From: Amoeboaphelidium protococcarum X5
Lineage: Eukaryota > Fungi > Aphelidiomycota
DNA length: 64,000 nt
Direction of reading: 5' to 3'
NCBI GenBank assembly: GCA_023515725.1
Contig: JALDTO010000266.1
Location: forward strand, 831,070-895,069
In this document: piece after piece, positions 4,084 to 45,543 of the stretch
How the letters are laid out: each line of letters starts with the position of its first letter
How positions within the stretch are numbered: the first letter of the stretch is position 1
Program-made: the position numbers and the translations under genes
The notes under the pieces: generated by a model
What the model was told of the DNA's origin: nothing
Databases searched by the model: none
The model's input: the letters and a program-made list of their open reading frames with translations, nothing else

Positions 4084-7000
4084 TCAACCTTGTGCAAATA
4101 TGGATGGATGATATTCGGGCACATCAAACAGCAAAGGTCTTTGATATAATGACTGCTACTTTTGGTCTTTTAATGGAGAAGGTTTCTTCTATAATGCCGT
4201 AGAACCTTAATCACTGCCACCGTTCTAATCTTCGGACAAGTCAACCTATTGGAGAATCTTGAAGGCTCCAGTGCCGACATTCATATGCACACCCATGATA
4301 ATACGCTCAGATACTCCCTCAATGTGGTCAACTTTAGAGTAGGTGGACGCGTCAAAGAGGTGATCCGTGGTCTTCTCAAATGAGGCCAACATGAGAACGC
4401 TATCTTTCATCTTGGCAATACCAAATCGCGTTATGCCCAATACTTCACCCTTGAATGTCATGATATCAGCCAGAATCATCACATGCCTAGAATCAATGGT
4501 CATACCATGACTACTCATAGTATACTGAATCTGGTCGATGATGGATTATCTGGCAGCTTCAATACCCAACACCTACTCAACTTCAGCAATGTGATTACTG
4601 GTCGACTCTAGCCCAACGACACCATCAGTAGTCATCACCTGTCGCAAACCATAACCTTCAGCTAAAAGTTCATAATGACCGCTCTTGCCTTGTTGTTCAT
4701 TGATCACAGCTCTATTCACAGTGGGGATTCCGCAAATGATAACATCGGTGATCAGTCTCTTTACTCTCTACAGTTCATAGAATGCCGAGTCAGCCTTCTT
4801 AGCATCATGCACCAGGATTCGGATAGCCTGATTCTTCTTTGACATTTAGATATCTGATGCACCAACTTTGAGCTTTGGAGCCTTGGCTATAGCTGTACAT
4901 ATTGAACTCTCATCAATCTCAAGTTGCAACTGGCGTATAGCTTCCCAGTCAACCTTGAGATCTAGATAACAAGCAGAACCTGATATCACTTCCTACACAT
5001 ACTCAACAACTTGGCCCAACTTGGTCGCCTCAATTCTTCCCTTGACAATTCTAGCCACAGTCTGATTGTCATCCTTAACAAGTTTAGCTGTGATGATCGG
5101 AGTCTTGATGAGCTTCGAGGCATTGATAATCTCCTTAATACGCGGTACACCTAAAGTGATGCTCATAGACGCGACACCGGCAAAGTGAAAAGTTTTCAGA
5201 GTCATCTACGTACCTGGCTCACCAATAGATTGAGCCGCAAGAGCTCCTACAGCAGATCCGGGTTCAATCTTGGACTTGTAATACTTTCGCCGGCAAACGT
5301 TGACGAAGTTCTCCAAAATCTTTTGAGTGACTTTAAAGCCAGGAGTCGATACCTTAGGAGCCACTTTTTCTTACACAAAAGCCACTACACTGTCGCCATA
5401 CTGCTGGGGGCAATGCTATAGGAACTCTCCATCCATGACCAACTGCTTAACCACGTCACATACTTGATCTGGCAAAAGTAGCAGATCATCATCTTGCGCT
5501 CTATGTAGATTCATACAAGCCAAGAAGTTCTTATTAAAATCTACAGGCAGGTCATTGCCTTCCATAGACGTGGGATCCAGTTTATCATTTCCGTACTCAA
5601 ACTGTATCATTGATCCCACACTACTTCTCACACTGTAGTCATAGCTCACGGATAAATCTTCCAATGCCTTCATCAGTCTACGCTGCATGTATCCAGTCTC
5701 GGCCGTGTCAAATACATGCAAACCATTGGCCAAGCCGAAATTCAGAGTAGATGGCACAGTCAGATCGTACACTTTCATACCAGGCTGAGCAGGCATCTTG
5801 ACAATTTCCACAATCTCATCCAACACAACATCATTCTAGAAGGCGTAATTACAATGTTAAAGAGAACACTGTATTGACTTCAGTTACTTATCCTTTTCAG
5901 GAATTAGCAAGGTAAGATTATCTTTGAGCACCTGAGCCCAGTAAGCAGAAAATACAACGCGATGTTGAGGAAGGACATTATCAACCTCATTAGACTCCCA
6001 ATAAGCAACTTATATGCTTCCAAAAGCACCCAAGCGACTACATAGCATCGCAATACCTTCAGACAGACGCAGAGATACAGCACCGGAATCAAGACTGTAT
6101 TCAGATACTGATCCATTTCCAGTAAAGTAACCATTGAGAAGACCGACAACAAACTCCATTGGGGCAGTAAAAGCAACATCAGGCACAAACTTTTAACCAG
6201 CATCAGATCCAATCAACTGCTTCATAAACCTGGCGAGAACCATAGAACGGCCGCAAACACATTAGCGTATTCTACCCTTAAGACTCTTTGCGGTTGTATG
6301 CTCCCAATGTATGTTCAACTTATCAAACCAGCTTTGAACGAAATTCTGCACATTCTTGTCATTGATGAGAATGCTGATTCGCCCAGGCTAAATGTCACAC
6401 TCACCTTGAGCCAAATACAATCCAATAAACACTCCATTCTCATAATCCAATTGAAATTAGTCAGGAACGCGTCCATGCTCATCAAAACCGTTAGCATAAA
6501 CATCTTCAGGTAGATAATCCCTCATATCAATATACTGAACAGTGACAGAAGGCTCAGCCAACTACATAGTCACTGGCATTTAATCTCCAATGACAATCTA
6601 TGAAGTCAACTTCTCCTCAAACTTTCTGGTGATCTTGTCATAAATCAATAACGACTTGGATTCAACAACAGTCACAGAACGACCACCTTTAGTCTTGACT
6701 TCATACAGGACCTCACCTGGATCATGACGCGTTACAGCAGTGACTTAAGCCCACGATACATATCCATTAGAATCAGTGGTTGGTATATACACCTGATTAC
6801 TCACAGCGGCATCATTACCAATTCTTAACAACTCTGTATCATATTCCTACTAAAGAGTAACATGACTACCATTCATAGACAACAAAGAATCAATCCAATC
6901 TCCAATGAGGACATGCTTCGACTTTCCATCATCAATGATAACCAATGCCGTGTCTCCAGTGACACTCTTCACAGAAGTATCCACCAAACCTTCACGTCCA

Positions 7001-9558
7001 GACGCTGCGTGGAAGAAGAATTCTGTAGGAGACATTCCAGTATAGAAGGAGTTCTTCACAAAGCCCTTTGACGCCGGGTCTCTGGAGCGACGTTTAAAGT
7101 GTGGCAGAGTACGCTCATCAAAACCATCAGCTATTCTACTACCATTGATAATCTGCTGTCCGACACATGCCGTCATTTGACACACATTAATTTTGGAACC
7201 TTTAGAGCCACACACAGCCATGATTAGGGGAGAATTGTGCTTGTTCAACTCTTACAGACAGATCTAACCAAGATCATCACGAATCTTACTCAACTTACCA
7301 GACATTTACGCCTCCAGAGTCTGATCTTCATTACAACCAGCCTGACACTACAGAGTTCCCTGTTTATATTGCTCAATGTAGCCATCACATTCCTGATAGC
7401 CAGCCTTGATCACCTCATCACGCCTCTGCCACAGACGTTCGCCAGGTGCCACGTCCTCCAGTCCGATAGAGAAGCCCCGGTTCTGCATGAATCGAGCACA
7501 CAACTTTGCCAGTCGATTCATAAAATATCCTGCAACTTCGGGTCCATAATCTTTCAGGGCCACATACAGAATCGAGTCTTTGTTACCATCACCAACTATA
7601 CTCTTGTCAATAACACCCGACAGGACTTCACTATTATGCACAGCCACCCAACCATCATTTGGGCACTTGTAAACAGAAATATCTGGATTTTTGACAAAAG
7701 ACTTATTCTTACACTCCAAGTTTATGAATACTTGGCTTTATTTATTGGGACGCATCAGAATGTTGAACACCTATTTCCCCGTATATAACACTTAAGGCTT
7801 CAATATCACAGGATCAGGAAGATCTATACGTTCATTGGCATCAAACATAGAGCAACAGATTTAAACAAATTCTTCCTTAGTATAGAACGAATCCTTCTTG
7901 GTAATCAGATAAGCTCCAGTAATAAAATCCTACGTGGCCGCAATAAGAGGCTATCCATTTCGAGGTGTGACAAGATTATTCTTCGATCCCATAAGAACAA
8001 CAGCCTCTGCTTTAGCCTCCTCCGTCTATGGGACGTGCAAGTTCATCTCATCACCGTCAAAATCCGCGTTGAAGGGGGTACATACACACTCATTAAAGCG
8101 GAAGGTCTTCCATGGCTTGACAATGGCATAGAATGACATGATACTAAGCTTGTGCAAAGATGGCTACCGATTGAACAGCACCACATCACCATCCATCAAA
8201 TGCCGTTCCACCTCATCACCAATCTTCAACTCCCGGGCCAACTGTGAGCGATCAACAACAAATTTCAAGAATCGCTTCGGTTTACCTAGTTATTACATGA
8301 AATTGGCACCAGGATGTTTATCAGGCCCATTGATTACGCATTATCTCAGTCTCTAAATGTTAAACTCCGTAACAACCTCAGTATATGTTAGAGTTTTAGC
8401 CACCAAATCAGGCACAGCGACCTGATCAATGCGCAGATTCGGATCCGGACTGATCACCGTTCTGGCTGAGAAATCCACACGTTTACCACTTAGATTACCT
8501 CTAAATCTACCCTGCTTACCTTTCAGACGCTAACAGACACCTCTGATCCATTTTGTAGTCTGTGTTGCATTGGCAAGGTTAGGCAGCTCAGAGTTGACCA
8601 ACTGTGCCAGTGTAAGCTGCAATAACTCCCAATCTTCAGATACGCGTAGACTAGTATCACCATCCTGCAGTGACTTCAATATCATCTGATTAAGCATAAT
8701 GGCCTCAGCCAACTTCACAGTGATATCATCTTCATTACTTCCAGCGTCGCCCTTGTCCATTGCAACAGAGGGACGAATACACACTGGAGGCACAGGGATG
8801 GTGGTCCATAAAAAAGTCTCTGGGCGACCGCTGTCCACATTCAGACCAAGGAGTTCACAATCCTCTGAGGAGATGCGGGTGAATAGATCAAACACCTTGA
8901 GAGGAGTAAGATCATCCTATGCTTTCTGCAGATGCGCTTTAAACTCTAGAGATTCCTAACATAGCTTGTTAAACTTTTGATGGAATTAATTCTTTGCCAG
9001 CTCAAACTCGGCAGACTTGGACTTTGATTTGTACTTCTCATGCACTAGACGCAGAACGCCAGCCTTCTTCACCGTACCATTCAAGTCTCCACAGTACGGA
9101 CAGGTATGTACCTTCTTACACGCGCTGGTTATCGCTTTAATGATGGCCATTTTCTACGGATTATCCAAGCTAGGATTCCTCAACTTTCTTAAGTAAGCGC
9201 GTCTATCATCAACCTCCAATAATACTTTAGAGCAATTTTTACAGATTTGCTGCAGAATCTATTGAGTTGCCTTAAAGAATCCAGCATGGAACACTGGCAA
9301 CGCAAGACGAATGAATCCCCAATGACCAGCACACTCTGCAAGTTTCAGACCACACGTCTCACAAGTGGCGTCTTTGCCAGACACGCCCATCTTTGGATCC
9401 AAGATACCACCACGCGCAGGCGTTCTATTGACCGGATTGTAAAAATCGCGATTATAAATCTCCAACTCCGACTATGCTTATACCTCATTCGCATTCAGAA
9501 TACCAAATTCAATAGTTTTCACTCTCTTCTTTTAATTATCCACTACTAATTCCTTCAT
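4084..9558 (-). CDS. RPC1: RNA polymerase III largest subunit, intein-containing precursor (1824 aa, no introns)
   Basis: Starts [21 protein letters not shown]. Contains the Zn-binding [46 protein letters not shown], catalytic [39 protein letters not shown] and [23 protein letters not shown]. No CTD. Single frame with TAR=Gln, TGA at 4084-4086. Confidence 0.96.
5707..6966 (-). mobile_element. Intein (420 aa) with LAGLIDADG homing-endonuclease domain, inserted in the RPC1 bridge helix
   Basis: In-frame insertion splits DTSVK|[12 protein letters not shown]-terminus [11 protein letters not shown]. Block-B region [30 protein letters not shown]-like motifs [11 protein letters not shown] and [11 protein letters not shown]. 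Blocks [10 protein letters not shown]...[23 protein letters not shown], then +1 Thr. Confidence 0.94.
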
Positions 9559-16269: not shown

Positions 16270-17290
16270 TCACAACATCATCAGCATCAGAGCAGGGATG
16301 GCAGCGAATAACGCGCTGATTGCCACATTAGATGTGCCACTGCCCATGATTGCATCCTAAATATCGGACAGATCAATATCAGCAACACACTTCTTTACAT
16401 CCTTGATAGGAGTAAAATTACCATAATTGAAACCGGCATCCTTTGCCACCTCAACAGCTTTCGGATTCTCAGTGACCTTCTACTCACAAGTTGCGTACTC
16501 GCGAGCATCATCGGCAGGAACTCCAACAACAGCCTTCTGAGTGTCACAGATACTGTGCATACTTTGACTGTAAGCCTAGACGTACATAGAGGCCTGAAGA
16601 GGATTGGTAGCATCCAAACACCACTCAAAGAAGATCTTTACTTCCAGCTTACAAGACAACTTGATGTCCAACAAAGCCTGACATGGAGCATTGTTCAAGC
16701 TTGGAGGTGGCGCAGGCACTGGAGTTGGAGCACTTGGTGGCACACTGTAGGTTGGTGTCTCAGTGCTGACTCCAGCAACGGTGGACACGCCAGACCCAAC
16801 TGAAGTTACGCTGTTAACAACGAGAGTAGATGATACGACTTAAGTCTTCGATACAGACGGAGTCTAGTAAGCAGGAGTATTACCGCCAGCAGGAGGAGAG
16901 GATTGATAAGCAGGTGGATTGACTACAGTAGAAGTTGATCCCCCTGCAGGGGATGAGCTTACGACGGCTGTGCCACTAACAGCTGGAGAAGACTTGTAAG
17001 CTGGTGGATTTACAGCACCGGATGTAGTAGTTACAGCAGTGCCAATGACGGAAGTGGAAGTCTTCTGAGTCGACACCAAAGGTGCGGTAGTAGTAGTAGA
17101 TCCCAGTGAACCATTAGTTTTGGTAGTGATAGTGGTGGAGGTAGATTCCACAGTAGCAGCACTGACAGGCACTGTGGTAGTGCTGGTCTTCACAGTCAGA
17201 GAAGTAGTGGTAGTAGCCTTATTGGTAGTAGTGGTGGATTCAATGGTAGCAGCACTGACAGGAACAGTGGTAGTAGTCGGTACCTTAGTG

Positions 17291-17321
<31 letters not shown>

Positions 17322-18282
17322 TGGTGGTGGTAAAAGCACAAGATGCAGGCTGAGATGGTACTTGGCACTGTTCCAGCGTCTAAGCCTAAGGACAACGACC
17401 GGCAGCACAGTTCATAATTCTCTCAGATGGGGGAACCACCGCGCTACATTGATCGACAGACTAACAGTCCGTGCGGTCCTTATTGTAATTACCACACATA
17501 CCAGAGACAGTCTTTTCAAACGCAGAGTTCAGCGTGATAAAGTTGTTCAGGTAAGCAACGTTGTTCACTGCACCCCACTAGACAGAAATCATTGCCACAC
17601 CGTTGATATTAAACAGCAGCTGATTGTCCTATACAGTAGCCGTGATTCTATCCTTATTTCCATAAGGAGTATAGGTGGTTGTAACCTTTCCCCCAGAGAA
17701 AGACGTGGTAACAAGGATGAACTAATCCAGAAAGCGGATACCCAGAGATTTGGTACAGGTGAGAGCCATGCCACAGTAACCTTGTTGGCCTTGCACAGTC
17801 AAGTATGGACTTTTAACGTAGTACACCGTGTCAGCAGGAGTGTCAAGCAGATTTCTTGGGATTGTGAAACTGTAGTTGACACCATCGAACGTCAGGACGT
17901 GAGGATCACCAGTGACACTACAAGTAGCTGCGCGATCGATACCGTTTACAACCTTCAGCGCTACCTCCTAAGGCTTACTGCAGGGAGTGGTGTACACCAG
18001 CTTGGCCTCCTTGACCATTTTTCCGGGGGCAGAGATTTGCAAATTCTGAGGCTTGTTCCAATTCTAACGCGTAAACACCAGCTTGCATTGCGCAATAGTG
18101 ATCTCATTACTACCAAAGACCACCTCAAAGTTATCATTATCAGGAGCCTTGTCCAATGACACGGGCACAGTCTGACCAAGACTGCTCATGGTGCCATCAA
18201 ATTTAGTGAACTAATCGCCAAATTTTACCTGCTAGGCATTGACCAAGACGGAAGCAATGCAGATTAAGGACGCAAGAAGCAT
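16270..18282 (-). CDS. Secreted VWD-domain protein with Thr/Ser-rich mucin-like stalk, Cys-rich C-domain and GPI-type tail (670 aa)
   Basis: MLLASLICIASVLVNA, ATCSVTGDPHVLTFDG, SGMCGNYNKD, poly-Thr tract and hydrophobic end SALFAAIPALMLMML*. Confidence 0.85.
16797..17290. repeat. About 0.5-kb segment nearly identical to about 20256-20750 (stalk-coding region of two VWD paralogs)
   Basis: ORF-track peptides 16864-17193 and 20323-20652 are identical. Only one nucleotide difference was seen by eye (agctgg vs agccgg). Confidence 0.9.
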
Positions 18283-18419
18283 TGTTATATCTATTTAGTA
18301 AGTGGATCTATAAAGTCAGAGAATTTGATAGAGAGAAATTAATTGAGAAGAAGAAGAAGAGAGGGTGTAAAATATCAACATTAAATAAGTAGTTGGCCAA
18401 GATCGTCTTGCAGAGTGGT

Positions 18420-19749: not shown

Positions 19750-21750
19750 TCACAACATCACCAGCATTAAAGCAGGGATGGCAGCGAACAACGCGCTGAT
19801 TGCCACGTTAGAAGCGCCACTGCCCATTATAGCATCCTAGATATCAGACAGATTAATATCAGCAATGCACTTCTTCACATCCTTGATAGGAGTGAAATTG
19901 CCGTAGTTGATACCAGCATCCTTTGCCACCTCGACTGCTTTCGGATTCTCAATGATCTTCTGCTTACAAGTAGCATAATTGCGGACCTCATCCACAGGCA
20001 CTACGGTAACAGCCTTCTGAGTCTCACAGATACTGTGCATACTTTCGCCATAAGCCTTGACATACATAGATGCCTGAAGAGGATTCGTAGCATCCAAACA
20101 CCACTCAAAGAAGATTTTGACATCAAGCTTACAAGATACCTTGACGTCCAACAGAGCTTGACATGGAGCATTGTCCAGGCTTGGAGGTGGCGCAGGCACT
20201 GGAGTTGGAGCACTTGGTGGCACACTGTGGGTTGGAGTCTCGGTGCTGATTCCTACAACTGAAGTTACGCTGTTAACAACGAGAGTAGATGATACGACTT
20301 AAGTCTTCGATACAGACGGAGTCTAGTAAGCAGGAGTATTACCGCCAGCAGGAGGAGAGGATTGATAAGCAGGTGGATTGACTACAGTAGAAGTTGATCC
20401 CCCTGCAGGGGATGAGCTTACGACGGCTGTGCCACTAACAGCCGGAGAAGACTTGTAAGCTGGTGGATTTACAGCACCGGATGTAGTAGTTACAGCAGTG
20501 CCAATGACGGAAGTGGAAGTCTTCTGAGTCGACACCAAAGGTGCGGTAGTAGTAGTAGATCCCAGTGAACCATTAGTTTTGGTAGTGATAGTGGTGGAGG
20601 TAGATTCCACAGTAGCAGCACTGACAGGCACTGTGGTAGTGCTGGTCTTCACAGTCAGAGAAGTAGTGGTAGTAGCCTTATTGGTAGTAGTGGTGGATTC
20701 AATGGTAGCAGCACTGACAGGAACAGTGGTAGTAGTCGGTACCTTAGTGGTAGTGGTAGTAGTAGTAGTAGTGGTAGTGGTAGTGGTAGTGGTGGTGGTA
20801 ACAGCGCAAGATGCAGACTGAGTTGGTACTTTACACTACTGCAAGACAATAGCCTAAGGACAACGACCAGCAGCACAGTTGGTGATTCTCTCAGCTGGAG
20901 GAACCAATGCGCCACACTGCTCAATAGACATACAATCCTTACCATCCTTGTTAAAGTTACCACACATACCAGATATGGTCTTTTCAAAAGCAGAATTCAA
21001 CGTAATGAAGTTGTTCAGGTAAGCGATGTTGTTAATGGCACCCCACTTGACAGAGATCATTGCCACACCGTTGATGTTGAACAGCAGCTGATTATCCTTT
21101 ACAGTAGCTGTAATTCTGTCTTTGTTACCATAAGGAGTGTAAGTAGTCGTAGCCTTTCCTTAGGAGTAAGAAGTGGTGACCAGGATGAACTAATCCAAAA
21201 ACCGAATACCCAAAGACTTGGTACAAGTAGCAGCCATACCACAATCACCCTGTTGACCTTGCACAGTAAGATACGGACTTCTCATGTAGTACACAGTGTC
21301 GCTAGGAGTATCCAGCAGATTTTTCGGAATGGTGAAGACGTACTTTGCACCATCGAAAGATAGTACGTGAGGATCACCAGTGACACTACAAGTCGCTGCA
21401 TCATTATTACCATTAACAACCTTCAGTGAAACATTTTGAGGCTTTCCGCAGGGAGTAGTGTAGACCAGCGTGCCCTGCTTAGCCATCTTCTCGGGAGCAG
21501 AGATGTGCAGATTCTGCGGCTTATTCCAATTTTAACGCGTAAACACCAGCTTGCACTGAGCTATAGTAACATCTTCACTACCAAACTGCACTTCAAAGTC
21601 ATCAGTATCAGGGGCCTTGTCCAGCGACACGGGAATAATCTGACCAAGACCACCAATAGTACCGTCAAATTTAGTTTGCTCATCGCCAAATTTGACCTTC
21701 TAGGCATTGACCAAAACGGAAGCGATACAGATTAAGGACGCGAGAAGCAT
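19750..21750 (-). CDS. Secreted VWD-domain mucin-like GPI-type protein, tandem paralog (666 aa)
   Basis: Same architecture as 16270-18282: ATCSVTGDPHVLSFDG, ISGMCGNFNKD, near-identical stalk and hydrophobic tail. Confidence 0.85.
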
Positions 21751-22255
21751 TATTGTTGTTATCCAGATGGATCTATAAAGACAGACAATAAGACAGAGAG
21801 AATTATTATAATTATTTGTGGAGAGATGAAGAGAAAGTCGGTTGTAAAAAGTGTAAGGCCAAGATTGTCTGAGTGATATTAAATTGCCCGATAGCCAATC
21901 CCCCGGATTGTGACCATCTTGGCGGTACGCGGATTGGTCCCGCGAGATTCGACTTCAGTGGATTGGGTCTTGGCGACGTTGCACACCAATCCAATGTAGC
22001 TTGATATTAAACTTAAGTTTAGCTATAAATGTACTGTCGGATTAGAATATAAAATAATCTCACATTTGTAAATAAGGCTGATAGCACAATGCTAAAAACT
22101 ATCTTTGATTTTCACAGTTGCACTCATAACAGCGAAGGACAATATTTGATTGTAAAACATATTACATAGTCTAAATGGTGCATAAAAAATCTTTAAGATG
22201 TAGACATGACTGTTCTATATATATATTTCCATCGGCTTTATAACTCTCAGCATTT

Positions 22256-40164: not shown

Positions 40165-43100
40165 ATGGATAATTCTTCTGCTCCTCAGAGAAGAGTGAAG
40201 CAACTCCAGTTTGGATTGTTATCTCCAGAAGAGATCAAAGCTTGGTCTGTTTGTCGAGTCGATTTCCCAGAGACTTATGAAAATGGGCGGCCAAAGCTTG
40301 GTGGATTATTGGATCCTCGTATGGGAACTGTTGATAGAAATTTGAAATGCCTGACCTGTCAGGAGAGTATGAACGATTGCGTGGGCCACTTTGGACATGT
40401 TGAATTGCAGAGAGCGGTATTCCATATTGGATTTATGGCTAGAATCAAAAAGATTTTAGAGTGCGTCTGTCATTCATGTGCCAAGCTGAAAGTGGACACT
40501 GTAAGCCTGTTCCCTTTTACCGTTTTCGCTACTACCGCTATCCACTTTTATTTATCTATCTATATGTGTGTGTAGGACAATCCTCGATTTCTGCAGACTC
40601 AGTTCATCAAGGATCCGTCCAAGCGTCTCCGGGCTGTGTGGGAGCTCTGTAAAGGGAAGCAGATGTGCGAGGGGAGTGTGATCGAGGCGAGCGGGCAGAA
40701 AGCGGCGACGGCCGATGATTCACAAAATGTTTCTTCGTCGTCGCAGAAACGATCCGGTTGTGGCGCAGTGTAGCCATCGTACAAGAAGGAAGGCCTGAAG
40801 TTTGTGGCCACTTTCAAGTAGCAGTAGCAGTTTGAGGAGTCCGCTGAGCCAAATAAGGACATATTTAATGGGCATAAAGTTTATAATATATTCAAGCGTA
40901 TATCTGACGATGACTGTCGAAGGCTGGGTCTAGATCCCGAGTGGGCGCGTCCAGATTGGATGCTGATTTCAGTGCTTCCTGTACCACCTCCGCCCGTGAG
41001 GCCTTCTATACAGGTTGATGGAGCCAGCCGAGGTGAGGATGATTTGACTTATAAGTTGGCGGATATTATTAAGGCTAATTAGAACTTGAAGAATCATGTT
41101 GATGACAGTCCTGCCCATATTATCGCCGAGTATGAGGCTCTACTTCAGTATCACGTTGTCACCTATATGAACAATGATGTATCTGGCATTCCTTAGGCAA
41201 CGCAAAAGAGTGGCCGTCCTATTAAGTCGATTCGAGCTCGTCTTAAGGGTAAAGAAGGTCGGTTGAGAGGAAATCTTATGGGTAAGAGAGTTGACTTCTC
41301 GGCCAGAACTGTCATCACTGGTGATCCGAATATATCGCTTGATGAAGTTGGAGTTCCACGCACGATTGCTAAGACGCTGACGTTCCCAGAGATTGTGACT
41401 CCGTTTAATTTTTAGTAATTATAAGAGGCTGTGGATAATGGTCCGAATGAGCATCCCGGTGCCAGATATGTGATTCGACAGAATGGTGATAGAATAGATT
41501 TGTCTAGAGCTGGTGCGATTGAACTTTAACTGAATGTAGGTGATAAAGTTGAACGACACATCAGAGATGGTGATATTGTGCTGTTTAACAGACAGCCGTC
41601 TTTACATAAGATGAGTATGATGGGTCATAGAGTTCGTGTTATGCCTTATTCAACATTCAGATTGAATCTGTCAGTTACTAGTCCATATAATGCCGACTTT
41701 GATGGTGATGAGATGAATCTTCATGTTCCTCAGTCATATGAGACTAAGGCTGAGTTGTCTGAAATATGTATGGTGCCTCGCTAGATTGTGTCTCCTTAAG
41801 CCAATCGTCCTGTCATGGGTATCGTGCAGGATACATTGTGTGGTGTACGTAAATTTACCAAGCGTGATAGTTTCCTTACAAAAGAGATGGTGATGTCTCT
41901 ATGTATGTGGGTTCGCGATTGGGATGGTCAGCTGCCTCAGCCAGCCATTATAAAGCCTGTGCCTCTATGGACAGGAAAGTAGATTTTCAGTCTCATCATT
42001 CCACCAGGAACTAATATGATTGGTTATCACTCTTAGCATCCAGATAATGAGTCTAGTGACATTTCTCCTGGCGACACCAAAGTGGTTATTTACGATGGTG
42101 AACTGGTCTGCGGTATCATTTGTAAAAAGACTGTTGGTACATCCTAGAATTCTCTCATTCACGTCATTTGGAAAGAGCATGGACCTGAGAAGACTCGCAA
42201 TTTCTTTGATGGATGTCAGGCAGTTGTGAATAATTGGCTGTTTAGTTATGGATTTAGTATCGGGATTGGAGACACGATTGCCGATGCTCAGACTATGCAA
42301 GTAGTTGCCACTACTATCTCTAATGCAAAGAATAAGGTGACTGAGTATATTTCCTAAGCTCACCGTAATGTACTGCAGCCATCGCCTGGTATGACAATAC
42401 AAGAGTCTTTCGAGAGTAGAGTTAATTAAGAGTTGAACAGAGCCCGTGATATCGCCGGTGCTAGTGCTCAAAAGTCTCTGAATGATGCCAATAATGTAAA
42501 GTAGATGGTGGTGGCCGGTAGTAAAGGTTCTTTTATTAATATTTCATAGATGACTGCGTGTGTCGGTCAGCAGAATGTTGAAGGTAGAAGAATCCCGTTC
42601 GGTTTCAAGTACCGAACGCTTCCACATTTCACCAAAGATGACCAAAGTCCTGAGAGTCGTGGTTTTGTGGAGAATTCTTATCTCCGAGGACTGACTCCCT
42701 CTGAGCTATTCTTTCATGCAATGGGTGGTCGAGAAGGATTGATTGATACTGCGGTTAAAACGGCCGAGACCGGTTATATCCAGAGGCGATTGGTGAAAGC
42801 TCTCGAGGATGTTTCTGTTGGTTATGACTGCTCGGTTAGAAATGCACTTGGTCAAGTTTTGTAGTTTGCCTATGGCGAGGACGGAATGGACGGAACTAGT
42901 ATGGAGCGATAGACTCTTGATTCTCTGAGACTTAATGAAGATAAATTTAAGATGAAATACAAGATCGATGTCTCTGACTCAAAGTATTAATTATCCCCAA
43001 AGACGGTGAAGCCAGAAATTCTGTAGGAAATGGTATAAACTCCGGAAATTTAACTTTTATTAGATGAAGAGTTTGAACAATTGTCTAGGGACCGCGCCTT

Positions 43101-45543
43101 GCTGCGTGATCATATATTCCGTAAGGGAGATAATTAGTGGCCACTTCCTGTGAACATTAGCCGTCTGATTTGGAATGCGCAATGCATATTTAAAGTGAAG
43201 AAGAATGAGAGATCCGATCTTAGGCCCGCAGATATCGTTAGATCTGTTTAAGAGCTCGCTAGCAAAATCAATATTATTAATACTCAGGACAAATGCACCG
43301 CAGAGCTTAAAGAGAATGCTTCTCTCTTATTTAGAATTCTGCTGAGATCTGTGCTGGCCACCAAGCGTATTCTACAAGAGTTCCATCTGACCAAGGCGGC
43401 TTTTAGTTGGATTTTGGGTGAAATTGAATCCAAATTTCATTAGTCTATGGTGGCACCCAATGAGATGGTTGGTACTATTGCTGCCTAATCTATTGGTGAA
43501 CCCGCAACTTAGATGACTTTGAATACTTTCCATTACGCCGGTGTGTCTAGTAAGAATGTCACGCTTGGTGTGCCGCGATTGAAGGAAATCATAAATGTTG
43601 CCAGGAATAACAAGACACCATCTACTACCATCTATCTAAAAGGTGATTATGCCAAATTGCCTTAGAAAGCCAAGGAAGTGTAGGCGGCTATCGAGTATAC
43701 TACTTTGCGGAAGGTGGCTGATAGAACAGAGATTTGGTATGATCCGGATATTGAGAACACTAGGATCGTGGAGGATGAAGACACAGTATTGGCTTATTAC
43801 TCACTGATGGTCGATGAAGACTTTAGTCGATACTCGCCGTGGGTGCTCAGAATTGTCTTGGACCGCAGAATGATGCTGGACAAGGAGACTAAGCCGCAGT
43901 TGATTGTGAGTAGATTGAAAGAGGAATTTTAGAATGATTTGGATATTTGCTCCTCGGATGAGAACGCTCCTGTACCAGTGATTAGAATTAGAATTTTGAG
44001 AAATGAGGAGGATGTGGACCAGGATGCTTTGGATGAAGAAGATACTATTCTTAGAAAGTTGGAGGCTCACATTTTGAATTAGATTCCATTGCGTGGTATA
44101 GAGGGAATTAATAGAGTGTTCATGGTTGAGAAGAAGAATGTGGCTCTAAATGATTAAGGTGATTATGAGCAGTTTAGTGAGTGGGTGTTAGAGACTGATG
44201 GTATCAACTTGAAGAATGTGATGACTGTTGATAATGTGGACGCCGGTCGTACATACTCCAATAATATTGTTGAGATCACAGAGACTCTTGGTATTGAGGC
44301 TGGTCGTGCTGCTCTGCTGAAAGAGTTGAGAAATGTCATTGAATTTGATGGTTCTTACGTCAACTATCGCCACCTGTCCATGTTATGTGATGTGATGACA
44401 AAGCATGGAATACTCATGGCCATCACTAGACACGGAATTAATCGTGCCGAGACTAGTGCTCTCGCTCGATCTAGCTTTGAGGAAACTGTGGAGATTCTGA
44501 TGGAAGCTGCGGCGTGTGCAGAATTGGATTAGTGTCAAGGTGTGGCGGAGAATATCATTATGGGACAAGTTGCTCCTTTGGGCACTGGAAATTTCAAGGT
44601 GATGTTGGATGAGAAGTCTCTGAACGCTATGGCTATGAAAGCGGGTATACGCGCTCGTGATAAGTATGGCTCTGCAACGCCTGGTGCGTTTACTCCATAC
44701 GTTAATCCGGAGAAGACACCTTTCTATCCTAGCGGCGCTAATGGTTTTGCTAATGGTGGTGGTGATGCCATGTTCTCTCCTATCATCAGTGCTGGTGCGT
44801 ACATGAATGGCGGATTCTCTCCGGTGCCGATTGGTGCTTCTGCAGCTAGCCCGGCGTTTATGGGTGGTGCTGGTGCTTAAAGTCCATTTGTACCTAAGAG
44901 TCCTCAGTATTCACCGACTTCTCCCGGATATAGTCCAACAAGTCCTGGCTATAGTCCAACAAGTCCTGGCTATAGTCCGACTAGTCCTGGCTATAGTCCG
45001 ACTAGTCCATCTTATTCTCCAACATCCCCTGGCTATAGTCCTACTTCACCTGGATACAGTCCCACGAGTCCGAGCTATAGTCCGACTAGTCCGAGTTATT
45101 CACCTACTAGTCCGAGTTACTCCCCGACAAGTCCTAGCTATTCACCAACCAGTCCTAGTTATAGTCCCACAAGTCCTGCGTACAGTCCAACCAGTCCATC
45201 ATATTCACCAACTAGTCCTGCTTATAGCCCCACTAGTCCATCCTACTCGCCTACTAGTCCTGCGTACAGTCCGACGAGTCCGAGTTACAGTCCAACTAGT
45301 CCCAAGTATTCACCGACTAGTCCGAGTTATAGCCCTACTAGTCCAAGTTATAGTCCAACGTCGCCCAAGTACTCACCAACAAGTCCACAGTATTCACCGA
45401 CAAGTCCTCAATACTCACCTACTAGTCCGTAGTATTCACCTACTAGTCCTCAGTATGCTGCAACTTCTCCTGCTTATCAAGGAAGTTCTGCTACTGCTGC
45501 CAAGTAGAAGAGTAGTGCAAATGGCAGTAACGAAACCAAGTGA
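40165..45543 (+). CDS. RPB1: RNA polymerase II largest subunit (intron 40501-40575)
   Basis: [34 protein letters not shown], uninterrupted [36 protein letters not shown] heptads and TGA at 45541-45543. Confidence 0.98.
44908..45453 (+). repeat. RPB1 CTD: 26 YSPTSPx heptads
   Basis: 21-nt periodicity. Position 7 reads G,G,G,G,S,G,G,S,S,S,S,S,A,S,A,S,A,S,K,S,S,K,Q,Q,Q,Q. Confidence 0.95.

Follow-up and report, generated by a model that had tools for sequence, protein, structure and literature searches.

Both an Asp end and the lack of a block-B His, the most highly conserved residue of inteins, have been recorded before, each in rare cases (PMC4031507). Inteins that begin with Ser carry motif NX: its His, specific to this group, follows an Arg or Lys whose partner is a Glu further upstream (Pasch et al. 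2023, PMC10189870). The NX His was essential in the three Ser1 inteins tested, and the block-B His, which is absolutely conserved among 58 Ser1 inteins, was dispensable in PolB16 (PMC10189870). Large side chains at position -1 can compensate for an absent block-B His (PMC6333167). Virus-to-eukaryote traffic of inteins, the largest polymerase subunit included, is documented in Gallot-Lavallee et al. 2023 (PMC10710043), where the Anaeramoeba cluster 9 inteins are described as having atypical C-terminal residues and as shared with Nucleocytoviricota.

The intein considered here interrupts the gene for the largest subunit of RNA polymerase III (RPC1) of Amoeboaphelidium protococcarum X5, in a 64,000-nucleotide stretch of contig JALDTO010000266.1 that we call the window. 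We think it likely to be a virus-derived, immobile, splicing-competent intein of class-1 type with Ser and Thr nucleophiles, which homed from giant-virus RPB1 and is released by cyclisation of its terminal Asp. Our literature search, which covered few subscription papers, returned no report of this intein in the lineage and nothing on the biochemistry of the viral family described below.

The RPC1 insert and its genomic copies

The RPC1 gene lies on the minus strand of the window (4084-9558) as a single open frame under genetic code 6 that begins at an inferred start, the ATG at 9558, and ends with the TGA at 4084-4086; it specifies a precursor of 1824 amino acids, or 1404 after splicing. Code 6 is required by 14 in-frame TAA or TAG codons within the insert, which make up 14 of its 25 Gln codons; when the two genomic copies of RPC1 are compared, the sense codon opposite a TAA or TAG is CAA or CAG in 20 of 23 cases, as expected if these triplets are read as Gln. 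The best PDB matches of the C-extein are yeast and human RPC1. The insert itself (minus strand, 6966 to 5707; precursor residues 865-1284) comprises 1260 nt, or 420 in-frame codons, with Hint and LAGLIDADG domains; it splits the protein between DTSVK and TAETGY, and removing it restores the conserved host protein. Thr+1 (ACG, 5704-5706), the C-extein nucleophile, aligns with position 879 of yeast Rpc1 and with Thr831 of yeast Rpb1, a bridge-helix residue. The upstream flank (6967-6981, minus strand) reads DTSVK in both RPC1 copies and DTAVK in the organism's own RPB1 and RPA1 and in most viral hosts.

An earlier note on this DNA had read the insert as an intein, and every element that it quoted is present: the 420 codons, Ser1, the block B and block F motifs, the H-V-F-D end and Thr+1. 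Searched as stop-free pieces, the insert matches the Pfam profiles Intein_splicing and LAGLIDADG_3 weakly, both under the curated cut-off, and it shares 44% full-length identity with a viral intein (1e-136), so that chance is no explanation; viral relatives served for remote protein comparisons. Ser at position 1 (AGT, 6964-6966; the N-terminal nucleophile by sequence and conservation, with Lys at -1), Thr at +1 and Asp at F4 are as in class-1 inteins, and membership of class 2 or class 3 is ruled out, as Ser1 is present and F4 is Asp401, not Cys. Blocks A, B, F and G of the Hint fold can all be aligned, the fold itself having been modelled on a relative. Alignment also bears out the absences reported earlier: the block-B His is replaced by Lys104, with V-E-S-K instead of T-x-x-H at positions 7-10 of the block (6655-6666; alignment and family counts), and in block G (5707-5718; His417-Val-Phe419-Asp420, the last codon being GAC) neither the penultimate His nor the terminal Asn is found, both copies ending in Phe-Asp. 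By these comparisons the insert is a real intein, of class-1 type, with predicted Ser1/Thr+1 oxyester chemistry, and what is unusual about its aligned residues is that the block-B His, the penultimate His and the terminal Asn are lost together.

The assembly (23.6 Mb, 346 contigs) contains two RPC1 genes with 93% DNA identity. Both carry the 420-aa intein, 86% identical between them, with the same junction codons and the same terminal GAC, and neither the assembly nor the public contigs of four runs contain an intein-free RPC1. Two escapes that the earlier note had allowed for are thereby rejected: the terminal codon is not a miscalled AAC, GAC being present in both copies and Asp in nearly all relatives (see below), and the assembly has no second, intein-free gene that would make this one dispensable. 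Comparing the copies gives dN/dS values of 0.09 for the N-terminal splicing part (Fisher p 2e-11), 0 for the C-terminal splicing part (0 replacement and 5 silent changes; p 5e-4) and 0.28 for the endonuclease part (p 2e-8). The dS of the intein (0.33) is close to the 0.25-0.28 of the exteins, which indicates that the intein was inherited from before the split of the two copies. Purifying selection on the splicing parts, the presence of the intein in both copies and the lack of an empty allele together make it very probable that the RPC1 intein splices, as had been claimed.

That the insert is instead removed as RNA, or is an artefact of assembly or sequencing, we regard as extremely improbable. 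Sliding it by one base does give a GT start, but the slid insert then ends in CA, not AG; moreover, its 420 codons are open and under purifying selection in two copies, the same ends recur in hundreds of viral genes, and no joint that skips it occurs in the public contigs from four runs. Contigs of one run from another study cross both junctions, but the type of that run is unrecorded, and they are hence not RNA evidence.

The LAGLIDADG endonuclease domain (approximately 5842-6453, minus strand) is probably inactive, judging from the Pfam match and a comparison of catalytic sites. Where a mobile maxi-intein has an acid in both motifs, Gln187 (6406-6408) and Asn284 (6115-6117) are found, and the other RPC1 copy also has Gln at the first acid and a disrupted second motif, whereas relatives of at least 460 aa retain the first acid (E/D) in 204 of 210 cases and the second (D/E) in 199 of 210, or about 95%. 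With these acids gone and host TAA/TAG Gln codons acquired, the best reading is that the RPC1 intein is now immobile. The RPB1 and RPA1 genes of the same genome are empty at the equivalent site; this intein-free RPB1, with CTD heptads, is in the same window (40165-45540, plus strand). Compared with the nearest virus, the insertion-site DNA of RPB1 and that of RPC1 both match at 44 of 60 positions, and such equal likeness does not account for the occupancy of RPC1 over RPB1.

We also observed a canonical intein (Cys1...His-Asn/Cys) at GEMERD/C in both copies of RPC2 (G000 C192:~529100-530400, loci L039 and L044; C221:~44080-45370, loci L040 and L042), so that two Pol III subunits carry inteins in one organism. 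A broken extra RPC2 3' end (G000 C192:~533774-534100, L043) consists of an N-terminal intein part, a deletion with a frame change and then C-extein sequence. Elsewhere in the window, two plus-strand frames (17110-18156 and 20569-21426) have identical first 40 residues and so reveal a local duplication, with minus-strand genes at ~16273-18315 and ~19753-21954.

Relatives in giant-virus RPB1 genes

A 48-aa piece of the intein led to 31 viral loci, many in giant-virus MAGs, all 31 of which have the same intein at DTA[VIC]K/T of an RPB1-like gene. After protein and metagenome searches, with relatives drawn from IMG/VR and GVMAG contigs, the family stands at 307 or more distinct same-site sequences, the two host copies included. 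The set of 307 was delimited using Ser1 and Asp401, which makes the counts of these two residues in it circular; in sets delimited by extein motifs alone, Ser1 is found in 119 of 119 and 88 of 88 relatives. One row, L021, was left out of the tree, the 307-sequence counts and the second-allele counts, and was kept in the set of 119, in the host-identity sets and in the alignment behind the family profile used below.

Among these 307 sequences, gathered by similarity to Asp-ended queries with the best matches sampled, the C-terminal residue is Asp in 304 and Asn in 3, and never anything else. The penultimate residue is usually Arg (233), at times Val (43) and His in only 3; the RPC1 copy has Phe. 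Position 104, or B10, is occupied by Lys (267), Gln (17), His (15), Asn (3), Glu (3) or Asp (2); at position -4, Gln occurs 226 times and His 47 times. His81 and Thr407 are invariant (307 each), and Arg80 (306), Glu45 (306) and Asn409 (300) are nearly so. The chemistry that had been taken as peculiar to the RPC1 gene is instead the rule across a large giant-virus family.

We read the hosts of these inteins as viral and RPB1-like: none of the proteins exceeds 66% identity to cellular RPB1 or 56% to RPC1 (238 with enough flank and a second set of 73), and CTD repeats are absent from all 238 of the first set. A search of phages yielded no family members. Giant-virus-type RPB1 genes with the same intein also turn up in bacteria-labelled bins (L128-L136, P0123), which are probably mis-binned viral contigs; as candidate prokaryotic members, nine genome-bin matches were rejected, all having viral-type RPB1 flanks and looking mis-binned. 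In a quick, midpoint-rooted tree the two host copies nest among the viral sequences, next to P0136, a metagenome contig with 44% identity, with weak support for this nearest viral relative (SH-aLRT 86). By site, by signature and by its nesting in that quick midpoint-rooted tree, the RPC1 intein belongs to the giant-virus RPB1 bridge-helix family.

These relationships suggest that, before the two subgenomes diverged, the intein would have homed from giant-virus RPB1 into the corresponding bridge-helix position of nuclear RPC1, and that its endonuclease acids would then have been lost and host TAA/TAG Gln codons gained, leaving it immobile. The opposite direction, an old eukaryotic element passed from hosts to viruses, could draw on the fact that the searches under-sample spliced eukaryotic genes and list best matches. 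We nevertheless consider it improbable, given that no cellular host appears among the roughly 300 relatives listed (host copies aside), that the endonuclease motifs are mostly intact in viruses and dead in the RPC1 copy, and that RPA1 and RPB1 of the same genome are empty at the site. A search of the genome for an NCLDV capsid gene was blank, as was the control search.

The same viral RPB1 proteins (for example L029, L032 and P0078) often carry two further inteins in the trigger-loop region, and these provide a comparison within single proteins. The TLN/TFH site is three residues away from the canonical TQM/TLN allele. Inteins at TLN/TFH begin with Ser and end in Asp in 112 of 113 cases (Asn in 1); 101 have the R/K-H motif, 83 of the 88 scored have Lys at B10, and the penultimate His is absent. 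Those at TQM/TLN end in His-Asn in 87 of 87, with the block-B His kept in the examples inspected. By similarity, the TLN/TFH group (1.7e-24) is nearer to the bridge-helix intein than the TQM/TLN group (1.8e-15), so the Asp-ended signature may have arisen once; the two alleles are not independent evidence of co-evolution.

Active-site residues and the proposed splicing route

The best solved relatives of the family profile are the Ser1 inteins PI-PkoII and TFIIB. In the profile alignment, T-R-H-D falls on their R-H (structures 2cw7 and 5o9i), and Lys104 falls on their block-B His. The statement in the earlier note that there is no catalytic His therefore does not stand: Arg80-His81 (6724-6729, minus strand) supplies a candidate, His81 being the putative motif-NX His near Ser1, a proximity read from the alignment. 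Glu45 (6832-6834) is the likely partner of the Arg (PMC10189870). Of the features of the motif-NX subgroup, the Arg/Lys-His before block B and the earlier-strand Glu are present by alignment (Arg80, His81, Glu45), and the retained block-B His is not. In block F (5740-5766), the Asp is kept, as had been noted (Asp401), but the His has not been replaced by Asn: Leu408-Asn409-Phe410 falls on the E-N-F of PI-PkoII and TFIIB, which places Leu408 at the His position (F13) and makes Asn409 the ordinary Asn of H-N-F, as in the organism's own RPC2 intein. Going by this alignment, the missing block-F His is common to PI-PkoII and TFIIB, both working Ser1 inteins. A model of the viral mini-intein L029 (183 aa; pLDDT 89.8) shows a Hint fold for this relative and superposes on PI-PkoII with Z 23.0 and an rmsd of 1.6 Å over 166 aligned residues. 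In fold, too, the best solved relatives of this model are PI-PkoII and TFIIB.

From sequence, site, conservation, selection and family, which are all demonstrated, we infer the chemistry as well as the direction of transfer. In the first step, an N-O shift at Ser1 would be activated by His81, held by Arg80 and Glu45, together with Asp401. Position B10 normally faces the N-terminal, not the C-terminal, junction, and there Lys104, with the bulky Lys at -1, would replace the block-B His. The N-extein would next be transferred to Thr+1. In the third step, proceeding with neither a penultimate nor a block-F His, the carboxyl of Asp420 would attack its own backbone carbonyl to give an aspartic anhydride, which would be hydrolysed; invariant Thr407, near-invariant Asn409, Thr403 and Asp82 are candidate helpers by conservation and alignment. 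A final O-N shift would restore the bridge helix.

A route independent of the NX His, with catalysis by Lys104 or by the His at -4, is quite improbable. Lys is the majority B10 residue at two alleles, and a Lys makes up for the absent block-B His in Tko CDC21-1 (PMC4031507), but it is His81 that is invariant, whereas 13% of relatives differ at Lys104 and only 15% have His417. The assistance from the His at -4 that had been suggested is rejected on this variability, Gln being far commoner there. The block-B Lys, the other helper suggested for Asp cyclisation, may still contribute, but five other residues occur at B10 and this position normally lies towards the opposite, N-terminal junction.

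The main rival to Asp cyclisation, although unlikely, accepts that the RPC1 intein splices and has the C-terminal bond cut by Ser1, Asp401 or an activated water, with Asp420 acting as a base or positioning residue. The Carboxydothermus RNR intein reportedly continued to undergo C-terminal cleavage with Ala replacing its Asp, which counts for such release by another nucleophile. So does the loss of every His that assists the third step, and a review allows other mechanisms for inteins that end in Asp or Gln (PMC4031507). Only Asn ever replaces the Asp, however, in the three bridge-helix members and the one at the second allele counted above, as a cyclising side chain predicts. The three (P0184, P0235 and P0252) form one nested clade that still lacks the block-B and penultimate His; their Asn is an apparent reversion from Asp, and the nesting indicates that Asp occupies the Asn slot. 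This restriction to Asp and Asn favours cyclisation, which thus appears the likeliest release step, in agreement with the earlier proposal.

Comparison with described inteins

Interest attaches chiefly to the family, less to the single RPC1 gene. Absence of the block-B and penultimate His together with an Asp end is the norm across hundreds of natural inteins of an essential enzyme, and these natural variants make both the release of an Asp-ended intein and the role of the NX His as the sole conserved His open to experiment. The family brings its own controls: members with His at B10, members that end in Asn, mini-inteins (183-255 aa) and, within the same proteins, a canonical allele that ends in His-Asn. 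There is also a demand in protein ligation for inteins that have no Cys at their two junctions. The nuclear copy, trapped now that its endonuclease is dead and it has taken on the deviant code of its host, adds a further probable virus-to-eukaryote transfer, here across paralogues, from RPB1 of a virus to a Pol III gene.

We tentatively suggest, as a possibility that we hold somewhat short of even, that the more than 400 inteins at two giant-virus RPB1 sites, with the nuclear copy, constitute an uncharacterised subclass whose combination of Ser1/Thr+1 oxyesters, a lone NX His, Lys at the block-B His position and an anhydride release step is undescribed. Several described inteins resemble it in part. 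The Carboxydothermus hydrogenoformans RNR intein (attributed to Amitai et al. 2004) is said to have a natural C-terminal Asp and thioester chemistry. Likened by description, it has the terminal Asp in common with the RPC1 intein and differs in its host, a bacterial RNR. The Tko CDC21-1 intein (PMC4031507), in which Lys58 compensates, is likewise naturally devoid of a block-B His, and its structures are among the high-ranking matches when the L029 model is searched by fold; unlike the RPC1 intein it has Cys1 and an Asn end. [quoted passage not shown]

Closest are the same-site inteins of giant-virus RPB1, which share the insertion site, the catalytic signature and up to 44% full-length identity, and differ from the RPC1 copy in their standard code, mostly intact endonuclease motifs and usual penultimate Arg. 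Among the published cysteine-independent class-1 inteins with motif NX (PolB16 OarG, PI-PkoII/TkoII Pol-2 and Methanocaldococcus TFIIB; PMC10189870), the likeness extends to Ser1, Thr+1, Arg-His, the upstream Glu, the F4 Asp and the Hint fold and, in PI-PkoII and TFIIB, to the lack of a block-F His; from all of these the RPC1 intein family is set apart by having Lys where they have the block-B His, by the absence of a penultimate His and by an Asp end.
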